A program made the translations under genes and the position numbers. A DNA stretch of 64,000 nt. Source: Corallochytrium limacisporum Hawaii (lineage: Eukaryota > Protista > Pluriformea). Shown piece by piece: positions 2,876 to 63,915 of this stretch; the first letter of the stretch is position 1; each line of letters begins with the position of its first letter. The stretch is taken from the NCBI GenBank assembly GCA_002811645.1, contig PDIP01000122.1, forward strand, positions 34,098 through 98,097, given 5' to 3'. The notes below the pieces were generated by a model. It worked only from the letters and a program-made list of their open reading frames with translations, was not told the origin of the DNA and did no database searches.

Positions 2876-3447
2876 TGTTCTGTTCAATTAGTACTATTAG
2901 AGTGCCAATGCTTGCTCGCAATCTCTCGAGTTTTATCTAATCACCGATATACAAACTATTACTTTCTACATCACACAAACACTGCCACCATGGCCACATA
3001 TGCGAGGATCCAATCCCCATTGAGGGCGACTTCGAATACCTTTTCCGTCTGTCTATTACCAAGTGGTTACGTCCAATTCTTACTGCACGCGCACAGACAT
3101 TGGCACAGCACCGCATCTTCACGGGAAGATGAAGAACGATGAGCATGACCTGGGGAAGCCAATGGTCCGTGTGCGTTCGGTTTGCGCACACCACAGGGAT
3201 ACCACCCAGCGCAATGCGACTTGAGTCCTCCAAGAATACTTTAGTCTGGGGCTTCATTCTTCTTCACTAAGATGCAAGCCCTGGGGCGACCACAGGGAGC
3301 CGCCGTGCAATTCGCAACTGCCACCCCCCCCCCCCTAGCTTNNNNNNNNNNNNNNNNNNNNNNNNNNNNNNNNNNNNNNNNNNNNNNNNNNNNNNNNNNN
3401 NCCCCCCCCCCCCCCCTAGCTTTTCGCCCCCTTCACCCTCTCGCTCC

Positions 3448-42864: not shown

Positions 42865-43422
42865 CTACTGGATCGCACACTCGTTCTTCCTTGGTGTAGC
42901 ACTCTCTGGTTCCATGCCATCCACAGCCATAACTATCGAGTCAAAGATCTCCGCTACCTGTTTGTTATGCTTAGCTGACGTCTCGACAAAGGCACAATTC
43001 CATTCGTTCGCAAGCTTCTGCCCCGCTTGGGTGGAGATTACGCGATCTCCGACCAAGTCAATCTTGTTCCCAACCAGTACCATTGGCACGGTTGCTGAAC
43101 CCGTGGCGTTAAGGATCTTATCCCGGATGATTCGCACCATTTCGAAACTCGTTCTGGATATTACCGAGTAGACAAGGATGTAGCCATGGATGCCGACGGC
43201 GTAAGTCGATGGAAAGATGGAGAACTCGTCCTGTCCCGCAGTGTCAACAATTTCCACACTATATGTCTTTCCCCGAATGGTCATAGTCTTGTGCCAGGAG
43301 TTTTCGATGGTGGGGATGTAGTTATCGCTGAATTGGTTCTCCACAAACTGCACTGTCAACGAGGTCTTGCCCACGCCCCTGAACCCGAGGATGGTAAGCT
43401 TCCTATATCTCTGGTTTGACAT
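42865..43422 (-). CDS. RHEB: Rheb GTPase
   Basis: P-loop GFRGVGKTS with the Rheb-specific Arg, effector YIPTIEN, DTAGQDEFS, GIHGYILVYS and CaaX CAIQ. Confidence 0.96.
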   Translation of the reverse strand: MSNQRYRKLTILGFRGVGKTSLTVQFVENQFSDNYIPTIENSWHKTMTIRGKTYSVEIVDTAGQDEFSIFPSTYAVGIHGYILVYSVISRTSFEMVRIIRDKILNATGSATVPMVLVGNKIDLVGDRVISTQAGQKLANEWNCAFVETSAKHNKQVAEIFDSIVMAVDGMEPESATPRKNECAIQ

Positions 43423-44504
43423 GATTAAGGTAAATAACTATATCGAATTTGTTCCTTACTTCGTAGTAAAATACTCGCTCCCTGAAGGTATGTGTGGTCA
43501 ATTTACACAGACATTACCCGACTGATTGACACTTCGTATGGCCAGATAATCCCTTTTCTACAATACACAGCTTGAGGTCGCCGCCTACTTCCCTTGTATC
43601 CAGTCGCAGTAAATAGCTTGCTCAACCCAGATGTGCCAAATGTGCAGATTCAGGTACGTTATTGGAAACAAAGAAGATGTCCAACTTTCTGTCCACGTTT
43701 GGCCATTAATTTCACTTTTATCAGGTCTTGGGGTCTCACTTTTTTTTCTTCTTTCTCTCCCTCGTTCTCCTCCAAAAGTACCTCCTTGTCATCACTTCCC
43801 GTGCATCCGAAATAGCCAGTGTGCGTCAGACCCCCGTCCAACTACAACTACCACTCTTCCTCCAATTTTTCCGTTGTTCCCATCTCTCTGTTTGGATTTT
43901 TTTTTTCTTTTTCTTTTTCTTTTTCCTTTTTTTTTTTTAATGGTCTTCCTTTCCTTTTCGTTACCGTCGGTACTCACTGATACCAACGGTTCTCCTCGTC
44001 TTCCCTTCCCCCTTTTGTCTTATGCACTCTGTGCCCTTTCCTTCTCCCAACCCCCGCCTCCCCGCCGCCATATATCCTTGCGATCGTTCAATCGCCCTAT
44101 GTTCAGTCGTCCCACATCGCCTGTCAAATGTGCAGACAACGGCGTGCCGCTGGGGTGGGCCAGTGGAAGACTGGAGAAGCCTTCGGGGCGTACGGGCAAG
44201 GGCGGGCGCCTCGCTGCGCAGTGTCCCGCGAGCGATCTGGGTCGGGGGCAGCCAGCAGGGCGAGCAACGATGACACGGACTATTCGTGCTTTCTGTTAAG
44301 TCAAGCCTTGGACATTACTTTCATCTGGTCAAAACAAGGAGATACTGATACCGCATGATATGACGTGATGGATTTATGACATGATACATAGTGGTGATGA
44401 CGATGGCGATGATGATGGCCGGAACACACCGGCGCTGTTGATTTCCATACATGTCGGCACTAACACATGTTGATGCATGTGGAATCTTACTTGGTGCCAA
44501 TTAG

Positions 44505-46592: not shown

Positions 46593-47470
46593 TTAGTCAG
46601 TGTCCTCTTCCTGTGAGGAATCATAACCATCGTTCATATCTTCGATGGCCTTGATGACTATGGGATCGCTGAAGCCAAAGTACAGTGGACCACTGACCCT
46701 CGTTCCAGGCGATCGACTTGCTAAACACGCGCCTGTCCAAGGATCCGTCGCTGTGCACAAGGAGTGGAAAAAAGAGATTGCCGACATTTGTTAGTACTTT
46801 ACGAACACGAGGCTGAGAAACATACAATTCCCAAATACTTACGGTTAACTCCGGTCCACCGCCGTTCGGAGCCCATCCGAGTGACCGCAAATAGAGGGCC
46901 ATCACCGGCGTCTTCAATGGTCATTCTGTAGCAGTGTCCCTGGAAATAACGGTCCGCAGTATAGCCAATTGGGTACTGATGGCGGTAACGGCAGATGCGA
47001 TTGCTGTAGAACAGTTTGCGGCGGCTCTTGGCCACTAGCTGGCCCAGGCTCCTGACAGTGGTACCCACTGATAGTAGAGTCAGAGGAAGATGGATCTTCT
47101 TCGGAATGTAGTCAGTGACCGGCGTGTAGGGCATCTGACGATACCCTTCCCATTTGAACCGTTTCATTACTACTGGATGCTGTACTTCATATTCTGTGAC
47201 GGTGGAGACACGCAAGGGTTCCTCAATGATCTCCTCCGGATCACTGATCTGTCCGACTTCTGCACTCTCGCCCCGGATCCGACGACTCTGACGAATCCTC
47301 AGTTGTCGCATCTGCATCCGTCGTTTGGGTACACCAGGCGTCTTCCTACGTTTTCCTGCGATGCTTTCAGCAGTGATCTTGTGTCTTTGATCTGTAATTC
47401 CCAGGGACTCCAGGACGGCCCGGTTGGCCTGGATCTGCAGTGCCCGTTGCTGTTCGTATTCACTGGACAT
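46593..47470 (-). CDS. FYRN/FYRC-domain chromatin protein, two exons: join(47470..46843, 46750..46593)
   Basis: N-terminal SEYEQQR..I..N...L.SLGI motif; FYRN TVRSLGQL...YPIGY; FYRC GPLFAVT...SGPLYFGFSDPIVIKAIE. Removing a 92-nt GTAAGT..TACTAAC..CAG intron joins the two ORFs in frame (WTGVN-P-TDPW). Confidence 0.85.
46751..46842 (-). other. Spliceosomal intron (phase 1)
   Basis: Donor GTAAGT (46842-46837), branch TACTAAC (46796-46790), pyrimidine tract, CAG acceptor ending at 46751; contains an in-frame stop. Confidence 0.9.
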
Positions 47471-52616: not shown

Positions 52617-55600
52617 TCTCCACAGAAATTGGCCACCTTCGGTGAACCACGCCTGACGCCAAAGGGACACCAATGCCACGTCGCAGGCTCCAAACCCCCC
52701 CCCCTTCTCCCTCCACTTGCGACCTGCCGTGACTCCCGGCGCCTCTACCTTCCGTACACTCAGTACTGGCAATCACCAATTCTCGGGAGTCTGTAATTGC
52801 ATAGTTCCACTGAGATCGAACTTTGTCACAATCCCGGGAACCATGGCGTGATGGGTGATTTTCTCCCACAGTGGTCACACAGTTTGCTCTTAGAAACAAA
52901 AAAAAAAAGAAATACTGGAGCTGTCCGTCGAGTTACAAAAGATACCAAGGAACAATGGGCTCTGCTTGCTTTGCGGTGCAGCGTTGGTGTCGTTCGTTCC
53001 AAAACACCACTGTGTCAGCCAATTTCGTTTTCTTTCCTTCGTCGGTTTTTTTTTCTGTACCCGGCAGAACCCAAAATGGACAAANNNNNNNNNNNNNNNN
53101 NNNNNNNNNNNNNNNNNNNNNNNNNNNNNNNNNNNNNNNNNNNNNNNNNNNNNNNNNNNNNNNNNNNNNNNNNNNNNNNNNNNNNNNNNNNNNNNNNNNN
53201 NNNNNNNNNNNNNNNNNNNNNNNNNNNNNNNNNNNNNNNNNNNNNNNNNNNNNNNNNNNNNNNNNNNNNNNNNNNNNNNNNNNNNNNNNNNNNNNNNNNN
53301 NNNNNNNNNNNNNNNNNNNNNNNNNNNNNNNNNNNNNNNNNNNNNNNNNNNNNNNNNNNNNNNNNNNNNNNNNNNNNNNNNNNNNNNNNNNNNNNNNNNN
53401 NNNNNNNNNNNNNNNNNNNNNNNNNNNNNNNNNNNNNNNNNNNNNNNNNNNNNNNNNNNNNNNNNNNNNNNNNNNNNNNNNNNNNNNNNNNNNNNNNNNN
53501 NNNNNNNNNNNNNNNNNNNNNNNNNNNNNNNNNNNNNNNNNNNNNNNNNNNNNNNNNNNNNNGGTGGAGTTCGTCTTTCTTTTGTTGTTAGGTCTGTGTC
53601 GTGTATTCGGTCCAGTTCTCTCTTTTTCTCAACAGAGAAACTATGAAGACGACGAGTCCAGACTGGTTACAGGGAAGGGGAGGGGAGGAAGCGTGCCGCA
53701 TGGGCAGAGTTGTGAACAATGGTTCTTGCCAGAGAGAGATCGGGGTCTCTCTCTCGTTTCGTTCTTTCTTTCTTTTCTTTCTTTCGTCTGTTTGTGACCG
53801 TGACCCATCACCGATCGTTTGGTTGTCTCGGGGCGCCGACCGCGGTTTGTATTTCCCATAATTAATATAAGGGGATGGGTGGGGGGGGATGGGGAAAAGA
53901 GAGAGAGAGAGAGAGCCCAGAAGGGGACACGGGGAAGTTTATCAAGGGAACGGGGGATTGCCACAACAAACAAAAAGCAGCCCTCAGGTCGCTACTATGT
54001 TTTGAAATAACCGTCACCCATCCCATCGCAGACGTACACCTCTCTCCCCCCCCCTTTGTCCGACAGTTACCCCTCTGTTTTTTTTTCTTTACTGTTAGTC
54101 TTTGGTATCGTTGAACCCGTTTGTTTTTTTTTTTTTGGGCTCTCAGGGAAGAGTAGAAACACGGAACACACCACTACGTCGCGAAGAGCGATGAACAGAA
54201 GACGAGAGAAGCCAATTAACAAATCAAAAAAAGAAACAGGGAAGTTGTACGAAAGGAAAACACACTCATGCAGATTTTACGTGCACCTCCACCCACACTC
54301 TCGCCCACGAATTTCCGTATGTTTATGCTATTTAAAAATCTAGAGAGTCCGTTTGAGTACTGAACATACCACACATCCTTGACATCATCCGCTGGTGTCC
54401 AACAACTTAAATAGGAACAAGTAGAAAGTCCGTACTACCTCACGCAGAATCAATTCTATCTATGAATTCAGTAGTGAACATAAGGGAAAAATTCGAAAAT
54501 GGCTTACTCCGCGATTTTCTGGTTCTTTCCCTAAGACCCGCGTGTCGGATGGGTGTTGCCGGGAACGCACCATGAAACGCTCTCGTTCCATACTGGAACC
54601 ACCGTACCCTTTCAACGGTCCGTTTTCGCGAGGGCAAAGCACGAATGACCAGCAGACCAAAATCACAGTTTAGAGAAAGCGCGAACGCCCTATGGAATGG
54701 ATTCTGGGTCGCATGTTTAGTTTCTGTGTTATTTTTTTTTTCCATTTTCCTCTTTGTTTTTTTTTCCCCTAACCCTCACCTCCCCTCGCCTCCCCACTCT
54801 TCTGTCCTGCTGCTCGGCCCCCCCCCCCAAGCCCTCTCCTTCTCACTCTTGGGGGGAGGGGGGGGGGGGGGCACCGTGGGGTAAGCCGGGAGAATGAAAT
54901 GTAACCGATCGTCCCATCCCCCCAACTTACCACCACAACGAACGGGTACGCCGACATCCTACAAAGATCACTGAGTTTGTATGAACCTTAAAACAATGGA
55001 AATAACAAAGATCCGGTCCCCTGATTTACGTTGTGATGGCCAGGCACTGACCTAACCGCTCTACTGCCATTGGCCGGAGCGGTCAGACGAAACCTTCTCT
55101 AGCTCCCCTTCCCACATTGCATGACGTGATGAAGGAATCAATGACCCATGCTTAGTAGACACTTTGTCTCTCTCACAAGGATCAGGGGTAAACCCAACAA
55201 GGACGGCCTTGGCCAAAGCGGCACACAGCCCAAGAACGAAATCTTGAGCAAAAATGATAACAAAAAATGACGAACGGTAAGATTCTACTCTTTCTCTCTC
55301 TCTCTCTCTTTCGTTTTCTATCCTGCCATTATGAGAAACGCGATAGATTTGGCAGCCATTGGCTGGAATTCAACGCCCCCGTAACCCCACCCTCGCTCTC
55401 CCCTGAAAACCCTCCGCCCCCCCCCTCCTAAGATGTGGGGGGCAAGGGAAGGGCCACAGTCGTTTGGTTTTCTGTCTGTCTCTTGCACTTGTGCTTCTGC
55501 TGGCTTGCTTGGTAGTTTTTCTTTAGTACTCCCCGGGACCTAAATTCGAGATCCCCCCCGGGACTGTCTCCTTTCCGGTTTGAAGACATTCTCTCTCTGG

Positions 55601-59299: not shown

Positions 59300-60124
59300 A
59301 TGTCAGCAACACAAGCTGTCAAGCCTACTTCGGTGGTTAGTTCCGATCACGCCGACGCAGAGGTGGTGAAGGGTGTGTGGGGAGGCAAATTGTCTCAACA
59401 CGACTCTTGGGACAAGATTATGTACTCTGAAAAGTTTCCGTACATGGTAGAGGCACGCGACCGCGAAAGCGAATTGCTGCGCCAGATCCTTGACGAACAT
59501 GTCGAGACTTACGGAGAGGTGGCCGTCGTTGATGTTGGCTGCTCGAGCGGGGAGGCCCTGCTCCGCATGCAAGCCAACCATAAAGCCAAGTACTGCTACG
59601 GCATTGACATCAACCCAGCGGCTGTCCAGGCCGGTAACCGTCGCCCTGAATTCGACAGCGCGAATTGCCAGCTCATCCATGGTGACGCCACACGCATGTC
59701 CGAGTACATGCCGGAGGGTTACCAGAAGGACGAGCCTCCGCATATTGTCATGAACCTGGGCAACACCTTTGGCATTCTCTATGGACCAGTCCGCAAGGCG
59801 ATCCTTGAGTCCATGTGCGACTTGGTCGGAGAGAAGGGCACTTTGGTGCTGTCCGTCTACAATGGTGAGAAGTTTGACTTCGCCATGAACACATTTTATC
59901 CCGGCATCCAGGACCTCAGCGGTCCCTTCGACAAAACCAAGCACGCCAATCCCGGCTCCTGCGAAATCAGGAACGACAATGGATACTACAGCCATTGGTG
60001 GCACGAGGAGGAGCTGCGGGACCTGCTAGAGCCCTACGGTCTTGTTGTAGACTACGTCGAACGCTTCTCGACGCACTACATGTTGCTGACCGCGCGCCGA
60101 GTAAAGGCTCCGATGGCCGGGTAA
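59300..60124 (+). CDS. Class I SAM-dependent methyltransferase, substrate unknown
   Basis: Motif I VVDVGCSSG, YGIDIN, HGDA, NTFG; biased codon usage. Likely ATG at 59300, with an in-frame upstream ATG at 59225. Confidence 0.88.
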   Translation: MSATQAVKPTSVVSSDHADAEVVKGVWGGKLSQHDSWDKIMYSEKFPYMVEARDRESELLRQILDEHVETYGEVAVVDVGCSSGEALLRMQANHKAKYCYGIDINPAAVQAGNRRPEFDSANCQLIHGDATRMSEYMPEGYQKDEPPHIVMNLGNTFGILYGPVRKAILESMCDLVGEKGTLVLSVYNGEKFDFAMNTFYPGIQDLSGPFDKTKHANPGSCEIRNDNGYYSHWWHEEELRDLLEPYGLVVDYVERFSTHYMLLTARRVKAPMAG

Positions 60125-60151
60125 ATCGATAGTAGCAGTTCAAACAAATTC

Positions 60152-60178
60152 CACACACACACACACACACACACACAC
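60152..60178. repeat. (CA)n microsatellite between convergent genes
   Basis: Seen directly. Confidence 0.9.
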
Positions 60179-60337
60179 AACCAAAACTAGTAGGAAGTAG
60201 CATGGATGGGTATGAATAACACGCCTTCCCGTAAACAATAAAAGACATCGTCGAATTCTATAGAACCATATCCTCCGAAAAAGTCATGGCATACCTCGCG
60301 AATGGTGATGATGGAACGTAAGCATGTATGTATCTTG

Positions 60338-62146
60338 TTATCTCTTGCCCCCTCCAACGGAAGCATTGTGCATCGACGGGGGCACCCTGAGGAAGACATC
60401 TTCGTCAATATTCTTGGTGCCCTTGAGTTCTTTCATGTAAATCTTGGAGTTCCGTTTGTGGTTGTACTTGGCCCGTTTGGTGGGAGGGAGGTCATCGATG
60501 CCGACATTGCGGTAACCGCGTTCCATGAACCACTGCATCGTCGTTGTGGACAGAGCAAAGATGTGCTTTGCTCCCTGACTCAACGCTCTACGCTCCATGT
60601 ACCCGAGCAGACTGTCACCCTTTCCCAGTTTACGGTAGCTTGGGTGGACAGCCACGGAACCCACCTCAGCATAGTCCTGGTCAAACATGGTCAGGTTCGC
60701 ACATGCCATAATCAGACCATCACGACTGCAAACAACAAAATTGCCGATCTCTTGCTCGAGGTCCTGTCGGTCCCGAGGAACGAGATTTCCTTGCGCTTCC
60801 ATGGGCTGGATAAGGTCCAGTATGCCCGGAATGTCAGAAGTGGATGCAGGCCGCATGCCATCGTACATATCGACTGATATCATGGTGTTTCCGGGCAGTT
60901 CGTCGCGGGTGAATAGTTCGACAAGCATGGCACCGTCCAGGTTGCGGTTGATCAGATGCGCACGGCTCACGCCCCGACGCAGGGCACCGACAGATTGCTC
61001 CATATAGCGCAAGAAATCCGGCGGAATAACCTGCCCATCGCGTTCTTTCGCCTCTCCGGATTTGATCCACTGCAGTACCTTGACCGCGTCCGGATAGTAC
61101 ATAGCCTGGATGATGTTACCCGTCTCCTTGTTCTTCCAACACTGGCCTGAGGCCATGAAAATGAGCTTTTGCGCCTTCAGGGATGCGGCCGTCGCACTCG
61201 CGACCTGCTCGGATGGAACTTTGTAGATCTCTCCCCCAACTGAGTAGCCAAGCCCGGTGAGAACTACGACGTCGCCATGCAGGAGCCTCTCCATGATTCG
61301 ATCATTGTGTACTCGCCGCATGCTACCCGTGTACTGCAGATCGACACCGTCTCTAACTCCGATCGGCTGAGCGGTGAAGAAATTACCAGAGACGATATTA
61401 AAGTCTAAGTTGATTGGTGAGTTCTTGATACCTTTCATGAGCTTCCGTTCGATCTCGAAACGTGTATGCCCGGCTGCGTCCATGCATGCCTGGAGCATGC
61501 GCTGCGTTACCACAGGATAGCCACCAGCGAAATGTTTGGCCTCGCCCATGGAACGCAATTTCTTGTCCGTTTGGTACCCACTGCCCGCAACCAGGACTAA
61601 CCGGACGCCGATCAGGCGCAGCAGAGCCAGGTCCTCCATAACTGAATCCAGAGAAGGGTGCACGAATAGATCGCCGGGTAGATGGACCACTACTACCGAC
61701 CCTTGGTGGGCCTTGATGTATGGGGCACTAGTTCGAAAAAAGTCCAGAAAGACGCCCTGCGTATCATGCAGCGATGCAGTGAGTGAGTGCTGATAGAGTG
61801 GGTTTGCGTGCGACGCTGGCGAGAGTTCCACTTTGGCTGTGTCCAGAGATTCGCTTTGCATTGTGTTGGCCTTGGCAGGTCTGACCTCCTCCTCCCGCTT
61901 TGGAGGGGTTGGTGGCGGTGAAAGAGTTTGATCGCTATCGGAGCTATTGCCATTGCTACTGTTGCTGTCAACTGCGGTCGGGGTGTGGTGGCCACTGTGG
62001 TCATCGCTCATGTTCCGGTGCCACAGGAAGGGCACCACGGCCAGCCGCGGTGATCCGCCTGAAGGGACGGTAGCACCCGCAGCATACTTCCTAGTGGCGA
62101 GACCACGTCGGAACGTAGAGCGCGCTGCTAACCCAAATCGAAGCAT
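60338..62146 (-). CDS. argA: Classical (bacterial/plant-type) N-acetylglutamate synthase, AAK + GNAT domains, with organellar presequence
   Basis: FFRTSAPYIKAH, SGNFFTAQPIGVRDGVDLQYTG, LGYSVGGE, GVSRAHLI, LVELFTRD, AVHPSYRKLGKGD, WFMERG, YNHKRNSK; N-terminal MLRFGLAARSTFRR presequence. Confidence 0.93.
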   Translation of the reverse strand: MLRFGLAARSTFRRGLATRKYAAGATVPSGGSPRLAVVPFLWHRNMSDDHSGHHTPTAVDSNSSNGNSSDSDQTLSPPPTPPKREEEVRPAKANTMQSESLDTAKVELSPASHANPLYQHSLTASLHDTQGVFLDFFRTSAPYIKAHQGSVVVVHLPGDLFVHPSLDSVMEDLALLRLIGVRLVLVAGSGYQTDKKLRSMGEAKHFAGGYPVVTQRMLQACMDAAGHTRFEIERKLMKGIKNSPINLDFNIVSGNFFTAQPIGVRDGVDLQYTGSMRRVHNDRIMERLLHGDVVVLTGLGYSVGGEIYKVPSEQVASATAASLKAQKLIFMASGQCWKNKETGNIIQAMYYPDAVKVLQWIKSGEAKERDGQVIPPDFLRYMEQSVGALRRGVSRAHLINRNLDGAMLVELFTRDELPGNTMISVDMYDGMRPASTSDIPGILDLIQPMEAQGNLVPRDRQDLEQEIGNFVVCSRDGLIMACANLTMFDQDYAEVGSVAVHPSYRKLGKGDSLLGYMERRALSQGAKHIFALSTTTMQWFMERGYRNVGIDDLPPTKRAKYNHKRNSKIYMKELKGTKNIDEDVFLRVPPSMHNASVGGGKR

Positions 62147-62828
62147 CGTATGTGTCTATGTGTATGTGAGGTGATTGCCTGCCTCGTTTGCAAAGTACAC
62201 TATGAGTAGCCCATTCTCCCACTATCGCTTTTTTATAGAGGCTCTGTAGAATTAGCCTAGCGTATCCCCCGTTGCAATCACAATCGTTCTTCTTAGACTT
62301 TGCAGTGATGTGAAGGCGGATGTTTCACAGGTTTCCCGTTTGAAATAGCCCGAAATGGCCAAAAGAAACACAAGCCGACCCGTAGACTTGAGGGCACCGC
62401 CGAGACCCTCCCGCGGTTTTTAACCTTGCACAGCCTGCCGGCCGCTCGTCCCGCCCCATACTTTCACTACCGCCAGGAAAATTTCCCGGGTCAGCAACTG
62501 CCTTCCTCGCTTCGTTTCGTCATTTGCATTGCACCAGCAAGTGATCTGCCATCGCTCTCCCCCGCCACCCCCCTCCTCCCGGGGGCCCCTTTCTCCCTGC
62601 GTCCCCCAACCCCTGCCCCGCGCCGGGCTGTGTGGTGGACGCGGCACCGCACTGCCCATACTGGCCCCTCGGGTGGCAGGCGAGCCGCGCGCGTTTATGC
62701 GCAAGAGGAAAACATGTCGTTTGGGAACTGTGGTGATTGCGCTGCATGAGGGTGGCACGCGTGCAGCGTGTGCTGTCTCGTCTCCAATTTTTGGTCAACT
62801 TGGGCAAAGAATCAGTGTGTACATGGTC

Positions 62829-62836
62829 TATTTAAG
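62829..62836 (+). promoter_or_regulatory. TATA-like element upstream of the snoRNA host transcript
   Basis: TATTTAAG about 130 nt upstream of the first donor, downstream of a GC-rich region shared with divergent argA. Confidence 0.3.
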
Positions 62837-63060
62837 ACCATAACGCGTGGAACTGGACATGCAGACAGGCCTTGGGTCCTTGGGAGATGGAAAAGAAGTT
62901 CTGTCTCCCCACGAGGGTGTCGCAGACCTTTCGTTAACTTGGTCTAACCGATCAAAATTTCAAGGCGTAAGTGTTACATGTGTGCGTAGTAATGTGGATG
63001 AATAGACGATTGGGCCGCTCGTGTGCTGGGGAAGCAGACTTCAGAGATGCTCTCTTTGAC

Positions 63061-63141
63061 CAGGAAGATGATATCGCATATAAACCCAGCTCTTCGAGAG
63101 AACCAGTGAGATAAAGAATTGTATGCTCATAATTCTGACAA
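63061..63141 (+). ncRNA. Box C/D snoRNA, snR69-like (guide for the LSU Cm2948-equivalent, yeast numbering)
   Basis: C-like AAGATGA at 63065; guide TAAACCCAGCTC (63081-63092) complementary to LSU GAGCUGGGUUUA; D' TCGA at 63094; D box CTGA at 63135. The +5 rule points to the C. Confidence 0.8.
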
Positions 63142-63441
63142 GCAAAATTGCAGATCAAACGAAAGCAATCTCCTTTCTGCATCCTTCCTTCATCAGCGTG
63201 TGCTATGCCATCTAGTCTACTTGTCTCTTTCTCTGAATTTGTCAACAGAAGCAACTAACATCCTTTAGCGACGTTTAATCTATTTCAACACACAGTCACG
63301 TCACATTGGTGAGCACAAATCGTAAGGGTCAATGAACTAAGTGTAAGTACACAAAATGTCCGAGCCACTGAAGGGATATTGCGGGCCTTGTCTCGCATGT
63401 AAGGGTAGTTAACGAGGACAAGGAAAGGGTCAACACATAGC

Positions 63442-63712
63442 GCCACAGCTCAGTCAGGGCTTTGTTGTTCTCTTATGAACGTTTTCGAACGTTCATAAGC
63501 AACCAGTGAATCTCAGCCTGTTACCGCTGTGGCAAAGCAAAATCTGTTACTGTCTTGGCGGTGGCCTTTGGTTTTGGGATATTCTTTCCCGCCGATGGGT
63601 TCCAATTCCGCTGCAGTTCGACAGGTGTCCCGCTTGAGAGTTGGATCTCTGTGCTTTTGACCTGGGTGCGTCCCAGTGCATACAGCGATCCTTAGTTGCG
63701 GGATGAACAAAT
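63442..63712 (+). ncRNA. Box H/ACA snoRNA, snR191/U19(SNORA74)-like (LSU helix 69 psi2258/psi2260-equivalents)
   Basis: 5' hairpin GCCACAGC/GCTGTGGC with pocket AGTCA + GTTAC, 14 nt to the H box AAAGCA (63534). 3' hairpin pocket GAGAGT + TAGTT, 14 nt to ACA (63707). Both pockets pair with GUAACUAUGACUCUC. Confidence 0.88.
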
Positions 63713-63915
63713 TTCCAATCCCTTTTTGATGTCAATCGTTTCTTTCTTCACTTCAGTGAAAACGGTGTATTCTCCCTTATGAACCGACAGACCAACTAAC
63801 ATACTTCTCAATCTTCCTCTTCCTCCTCATTGTAACGTACCAGGCAAACATATATGAATGTGTCCCGTACAAGCAGAATGTATAATACATCAAATTCTTT
63901 TAAACCAATTCTCGT

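Follow-up and report, generated by a model that had tools for sequence, protein, structure and literature searches.

In human, the non-coding gene SNHG4 hosts the helix-69 guide U19 (SNORA74A). The same gene also goes by the name U19H (PMC7417930). In fungi, non-coding hosts with one snoRNA per intron are described for the clusters of Candida, Yarrowia, Debaryomyces and Neurospora (PMC3596301; Mitrovich et al. 2010). Intermediates in which the downstream introns are still unspliced have been documented for such hosts (PMC3596301). The loss and retention of snoRNA introns has been analysed in yeasts, and yeast snR191 is encoded in an intron of NOG2 (PMC4202332). This RNA guides psi2258 and psi2260 in helix 69, and Cm2948, with its guide snR69, is listed under the peptidyl-transferase centre (PMC8307265). 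No paper on snoRNAs in Corallochytrium was found in the literature searched.

The locus presented here comes from Corallochytrium limacisporum, whose genome has been published with a size of 24.1 Mb and 0.0 introns per kb of coding sequence at conserved sites (PMC5560861). We analysed a window of 64 kb (positions 34,098-98,097 of genomic contig PDIP01000122.1, in an assembly that totals 24,109,830 bases). The locus occupies a spacer of 1.77 kb with a minus-strand ORF on either side, and its features are collected in Table 1. It is a genuine non-coding snoRNA host, with one proven and one predicted snoRNA intron. Similar to the fungal hosts, it combines a short and poorly coding spliced transcript with an intron-poor genome and with yeast-like intron signals (GTAAGT and ACTAAC). 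Each of its introns, the proven and the predicted one, holds a single snoRNA, and here too RNAs are seen that retain the downstream (predicted) intron. Compared to the fungal C/D clusters, however, it carries one C/D and one H/ACA RNA, it belongs to a holozoan lineage and only its first intron is seen spliced. Vertebrate SNHG genes (UHG, GAS5 and SNHG4) follow the same principle of a non-coding host whose introns yield snoRNAs, whereas the present host is very small (about 1 kb, no more than three exons). The arrangement is already known from fungi and animals, and the locus taken alone is what would be expected.

Table 1. Features of the snoRNA host locus and its surroundings. Positions refer to the 64-kb window; LSU positions refer to the organism's own large-subunit rRNA.
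Feature	Position	Strand	Details
ArgA-type NAGS (AA-kinase + GNAT) ORF	60338-62146	-	
TATA-like TATTTAAG	62829-62836	+	Candidate core promoter of the host, putative from its sequence
Exon 1	62860-62966	+	5' end approximate; X1 and X2 contigs cover 62888-62966
Intron 1	62967-63295 (329 nt)	+	GTAAGT donor; ACTAAC branch site 63254-63259; acceptor AG 63294-63295
Box C/D snoRNA, snR69 type	63061-63141 (~81 nt)	+	Inside intron 1
Boxes of the C/D RNA	63065-63138	+	C AAGAUGA 63065-63071; D' UCGA 63094-63097; C' AGUGAGA 63105-63111; D CUGA 63135-63138
Exon 2	63296-63342 (47 nt if intron 2 is used)	+	Observed junction at 63296; contains the ORF stop
Predicted intron 2	63343-63843 (501 nt)	+	GTAAGT donor; ACTAAC 63795-63800; pyrimidine-rich tract (40 nt); first AG 63842-63843
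Box H/ACA snoRNA, snR191/U19 (SNORA74) type	63441-63712 (272 nt)	+	Inside predicted intron 2
Parts of the H/ACA RNA	63442-63709	+	5' hairpin 63442-63533; H box AAAGCA 63534-63539; internal domain ~63542-63626; 3' hairpin 63627-63704; ACA 63707-63709
Pocket 1 of the H/ACA RNA			GUUAC (3' strand) with LSU 2334-2338; AGUCA (5' strand) with LSU 2341-2345; U2339-A2340 unpaired; 14 nt to H
Pocket 2 of the H/ACA RNA			UAGUU (3' strand) with LSU 2336-2340; GAGAGU (5' strand) with LSU 2343-2348; U2341-G2342 unpaired; 15 nt to ACA
Predicted exon 3 or transcript 3' end	63844-63873	+	Approximate; X2 contig ends at 63873, followed by a zero-depth bin
Rad51-family paralogue ORF	63916-64836	-	Stop codon 63916-63918; convergent to the host
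Third good intron candidate in the window	46751-46842	-	Intron of a coding gene

Transcript data consisted of assembled contigs from two runs of two different studies (X1 and X2), which were aligned to window positions 61200-65500 (L001:1-4301). Rare variants are dropped from such contigs and RNA ends and levels are not readable from them, meaning that they show presence and not absence. Both runs behave as RNA, because the genes are solidly covered and the depth is zero in the flanking spacers (62352-62783 and 64944-65087, in either run). The X2 sequence is identical to the assembly. For X1, we observed a divergence of about 1% in the NAGS gene (10 listed sites over 1087 nt, 61200-62286), from which it follows that this run represents a different strain; another four differing sites are present in the Rad51 paralogue (within 63296-64914). 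Two strains can thus be compared at the locus. The spacer that follows the NAGS and methyltransferase ORFs on their downstream side contains a (GT/CA)n microsatellite (60090-60200).

A plus-strand spliced host transcript exists between the NAGS and Rad51-paralogue genes. Its contigs start around position 62888, about 52-60 nt 3' of the TATA-like element, and those covering exon 1 continue in both runs either into intron 1 or across the junction. This junction, 62966|63296 (GT..AG, 329 nt skipped), is found in contigs of both runs, thus in two studies and two strains, and is well covered with contig depths of 50 and 80. In the alignment of the X1 contig, ten letters appear between the two sides, which is due solely to an extra A that this strain has in the run at 62954-62957. 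An unspliced form containing intron 1 is present as well (a contig of 389 nt). Intron 1 is excised, with the snR69-type C/D RNA inside.

The initial annotation had placed two canonical introns on the plus strand of this locus. Their signals are indeed all present at the proposed places (GTAAGT at 62967 and 63343, ACTAAC at 63254 and 63795, AG at 63267-63268 and 63842-63843). The first intron had been drawn from 62967 to 63268; it is spliced from 62966 as suggested, but according to the contigs of both runs it extends 27 nt further and ends at 63295, so that instead of a joint 62966/63269 the contigs connect 62966 to 63296. The AG at 63267-63268, which lies 9-10 nt past the branch A (63258), is skipped, and the AG that is used lies 37 nt past it. 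Measured in the same way (branch A to the last base of the acceptor AG), the distance is 44 nt for predicted intron 2 and 40 nt for the intron at 46751-46842.

On the 3' side, about 43 nt separate the end of the host transcript from the stop codon of the Rad51-paralogue ORF, which is convergent to it. One X1 contig spans both the host and the paralogue, and the 3' ends of the two genes therefore probably overlap in antisense. On the 5' side, the spacer at 62350-62800 separates the host from the divergent NAGS gene. It is C/T-rich with 64% G+C, has zero transcript depth and is probably a bidirectional promoter shared by NAGS and the host. A scan for bacterial promoters and terminators was set aside, the host organism being a eukaryote.

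A search of the whole window with Rfam at gathering thresholds yielded no match, but more permissive settings gave two sub-threshold matches at the locus. In intron 1 these settings returned snR69 (RF00475) with 25 bits (E 0.16), where the gathering cut-off is 50, and DdR16 with 24 bits. For the downstream segment snR191 (RF01263, clan CL00043) came first with 20.8 bits (E 0.035 in a search of 1.4 kb), below its cut-off of 46. A snoRNA-like element had been suggested for each of the two intron segments; taken together with the guides and the fold described below, the Rfam matches identify a C/D RNA in the first and an H/ACA RNA in the second.

In the C/D RNA, the C box differs from RUGAUGA by one mismatch (U2 to A), the D box is CUGA and the distance from C to D amounts to 63 nt. 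The D' box has two mismatches to CUGA and C' is degenerate as well. A convincing terminal stem was not found, and the z-score of the fold is 0.0. Like in S. cerevisiae snR69 and Dictyostelium DdR16, the guide AAACCCAGCUCUUCGA follows the C box, precedes a degenerate D' and matches the Rfam consensus; it aligns letter for letter to the snR69 and DdR16 guides. A comparison with the organism's own LSU, SSU and 5.8S rRNAs (contig C219) showed that all 12 nucleotides of the guide (63081-63092) form Watson-Crick pairs with LSU 3024-3035, GAGCUGGGUUUA. We estimate that about 0.005 matches of 12 bp would be expected by chance (guide of 27 nt against 5.4 kb of rRNA). The snR69-like target is the C of GAGC, directly followed by UGGGUUUAG. 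This nucleotide, C3027, precedes the G-U-U of the peptidyl-transferase ring by four nucleotides, and it is opposite the fifth nucleotide upstream of D' only if D' is taken to be UCGA, with its two mismatches. Assigned by sequence context and the family guide rather than by alignment to yeast 25S, LSU C3027 appears to correspond to yeast C2948, the snR69 site. The second guide (63112-63134) gave only G-U-rich matches of chance quality to the own LSU, SSU and 5.8S rRNAs, and it differs from the second guide of DdR16. The RNA further differs from the yeast snR69 model in its length (about 81 nt against 94 nt), its C box AAGAUGA and its intronic location. In the yeast table Cm2948 is not flagged as shared with human (PMC8307265). 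The presence of a snR69-type guide in a holozoan, next to DdR16 in Dictyostelium, suggests that the Cm2948-type modification may be old and was lost on the human line.

The H/ACA RNA reaches a minimum free energy of -103.4 kcal/mol (z-score -4.6), and none of 200 shuffled sequences folds as well. Minimum free energy and centroid folds agree on two hairpins and an internal domain; the H box fits ANANNA, and the ACA lies three nucleotides from the predicted 3' end of the RNA. The design resembles that of S. cerevisiae snR191, which likewise has two pockets for adjacent uridines of helix 69 and, between its hinge and 3' hairpin, an additional internal domain. The yeast RNA is intronic, in the protein-coding gene NOG2; the present one is predicted to be intronic, in a non-coding transcript. 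Pocket 1 forms 5+5 and pocket 2 forms 5+6 pairs, the distances to the H and ACA boxes are within the canonical 14-16 nt, and each of the bipartite patterns is unique in the own LSU, SSU and 5.8S rRNAs. The predicted targets U2339 and U2341 are, to judge from context and the family guide (again in place of a yeast 25S alignment), the helix-69 loop uridines known in yeast as psi2258 and psi2260. The offsets to the yeast numbering are +79 and +81, which is consistent across the three sites. The peptidyl-transferase region and helix 69 of the LSU had both been named as targets in the initial annotation, and both are supported by pairing to the rRNA of the organism itself.

Within the H/ACA RNA, the X1 strain differs from the assembly by a single change. 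This is an A-to-G replacement at 63475, by which an A-U pair in the apical stem becomes G-U. The 'HSE-like palindrome' at 63472-63499 was rejected as a separate element, since it is simply the apical stem, capped by UUCG, that belongs to the 5' hairpin. Just 5' of the RNA and inside predicted intron 2, a stem-loop of about 10 bp is found at 63386-63423 (CCUUGUCUCG...CGAGGACAAGG), possibly a signal for processing or a 5' extension.

The intron signals at the locus are not due to chance. The plus strand of the window contains five copies of GTAAGT and nine of ACTAAC, where base composition predicts about 12-13, and at this locus two copies of each flank the two snoRNAs in the correct order. Based on the hexamer frequencies in the window, we estimate a probability of about 1e-4 for GTAAGT, ACTAAC and AG to co-occur around one RNA by chance. 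When the window is scanned strictly for introns (GTAAGT, ACTAAC, then AG), two of the three good candidates obtained fall at the locus; this agrees with the earlier count of two out of three confident introns in 64 kb. Remaining strict candidates were judged to be chance: 43201-44504 contains an ORF of 222 aa, the branch-to-AG spacing is short in 54075-54930 (-) and 59325-59512 (-), and on L024 (-) three donors are apparently antisense to a coding region.

We also applied the strict scan to 200 kb sampled at random from twenty other contigs, which resulted in one good candidate (L016, 3328-3536, minus strand). This putative intron of 209 nt has GTAAGT, ACTAAC and AG with a spacing of 35 nt and contains a UAUGAUGU motif; no snoRNA-like Rfam match was obtained within it, even at E 5. 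A scan of 264 kb for rRNA antisense elements combined with boxes proved too noisy: it gave 113 matches, the best of which (on L010) falls within coding sequence, and it missed the present C/D RNA because of the two mismatches in D'.

Overall, we are fairly confident that the locus is a dedicated non-coding Pol II unit on the plus strand (about 62860-63873) of which the two snoRNAs, and not the exons, are the useful products. After splicing, the lariat of intron 1 would be debranched and subsequently trimmed by exonucleases to the snR69-type C/D RNA protected in its snoRNP. Together with fibrillarin, this RNA would bring about 2'-O-methylation of LSU C3027 (yeast C2948). Judging from sequence and fold, the pockets of the H/ACA RNA would direct Cbf5 (dyskerin) to form pseudouridine at U2339 and U2341 of helix 69. 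The latter RNA would most likely be released by splicing of the second intron (63343-63843), which has complete consensus signals.

Results for this second intron are less straightforward. No contig of X1 or X2 joins 63342 to 63844, the junction implied by the initial annotation, and in both runs the contigs are unbroken across 63342/63343 and 63843/63844. In X1, record 5 covers window positions 63296-64914 (L001 2097-3715) unspliced; in X2, records 10 and 11 cover L001 2097-2230 and 2249-2674 (L001:1 being window position 61200). The abundant assembled species is thus one from which intron 1 is removed and in which the H/ACA segment is retained. For the two-intron host that had been put forward, this means that intron 1 stands as spliced, but that intron 2 becomes a prediction, with full signals and no observed joint.

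These contigs could also be explained by a host with a single intron, in which the H/ACA RNA is exonic (part of the last exon or the 3' tail) and is freed by endonuclease cuts and exonuclease trimming, as in the independently transcribed or polycistronic snoRNAs of yeast and plants. The signals around the H/ACA RNA would then be weak or en route to 'de-intronization'. Besides the contigs that cross both boundaries, the absence of the 63342|63844 joint in two runs, at intron-1 depths of 50 and 80, speaks for this explanation. A precedent is available from yeasts, where de-intronization of snoRNA introns is documented (PMC4202332; PMC3596301, citing Mitrovich 2010). However, the missing joint is weak evidence, because contigs drop rare variants, the full product would be no longer than about 180-210 nt and, in X2, the contig stops about 30 nt beyond the acceptor of intron 2. 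A spliced RNA of that length would be poorly captured. Moreover, the signals of intron 2 are intact, follow the consensus and are spaced like those of the proven intron 1, which would arise by chance with the low probability estimated above, and a processing signal of the Rnt1 type was not identified. Taken together, we consider a one-intron host a real but rather unlikely option, and the balance of the evidence tips moderately towards splicing of intron 2. An attempt to obtain a hint of intron-2 splicing from contig depth arithmetic was dropped as unreliable.

For a host with two introns, the RNAs that lack intron 1 and retain the H/ACA segment would fit slow splicing in 5'-to-3' order. Alternatively, the fully spliced product of about 180-210 nt might be too short or too unstable to be assembled. 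The H/ACA segment may also be a deliberately slow or retained intron, which is processed without completed splicing. Turnover of the spliced host through NMD is doubtful, because three of the four EJC components and part of the NMD machinery are reported absent from Corallochytrium (PMC5560861).

The longest spliced ORF comprises 45 aa (MQTGLGSL...GEHKS). It starts with the ATG at 62859, follows 36 codons of exon 1 in phase 0 and obtains SRHIGEHKS from exon 2; as noted in the initial annotation, it terminates before the last junction (stop at 63323-63325, with 17 nt of exon 2 remaining). A frame that passes in phase from exon 1 into exon 2 would be expected if the transcript were an mRNA for a micro-protein and the snoRNAs were passengers in a coding gene. 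We regard this as highly improbable. This ATG lies about 29 nt 5' of where the contigs start, transcription from the TATA-like box would be expected to begin close to the ATG or beyond it, and the next ATG opens only 16 codons. Translations of the exons, scanned separately and not as a joined model, have no match in Pfam, and the stop is placed shortly before the end of exon 2. In addition, exon 1 of the X1 strain has two insertions of 1 nt (after 62937 and in the A-run 62954-62957) that would shift the frame, whereas the flanking coding regions show substitutions only. Because of these two frameshifting insertions we conclude that the host is non-coding, as had been proposed: between the two strains compared, the exons are without coding constraint and a conserved peptide is not apparent. 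The expectation that protein-centred annotation would miss the locus is supported.

That the resemblance to snoRNAs arose by chance, in an ordinary spliced lncRNA or promoter-associated transcript, is equally hard to believe: the Rfam scores are below their cut-offs and three of the boxes (C, D' and C') deviate from the consensus, but three independent guide elements match exactly the sites of the two top-ranked Rfam families, the geometry is correct, neither pocket pattern recurs elsewhere in the rRNAs and the H/ACA RNA folds with a z-score of -4.6.

Summarizing, the locus adds two well-defined snoRNA genes and their rRNA targets for a lineage on which we found no snoRNA paper. It indicates that non-coding hosts in which each intron holds one snoRNA also occur in a unicellular animal relative from which nearly all introns have disappeared. 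This raises the question whether introns that deliver snoRNAs are enriched in what is left after extreme intron loss, a question that to our knowledge has been studied in yeasts and not in Holozoa. It can be proposed, tentatively and as something we consider possible rather than likely, that snoRNAs reside in a large share of the few introns left in this genome, among them those of dedicated non-coding hosts, and that the release of snoRNAs, instead of a function in mRNAs, is a main reason for the spliceosome and these introns to persist. If true, the helix-69 guide (snR191/U19) would have been intron-borne since the opisthokont ancestor, as seen from the NOG2 intron in yeast, SNHG4 in human and the present host.
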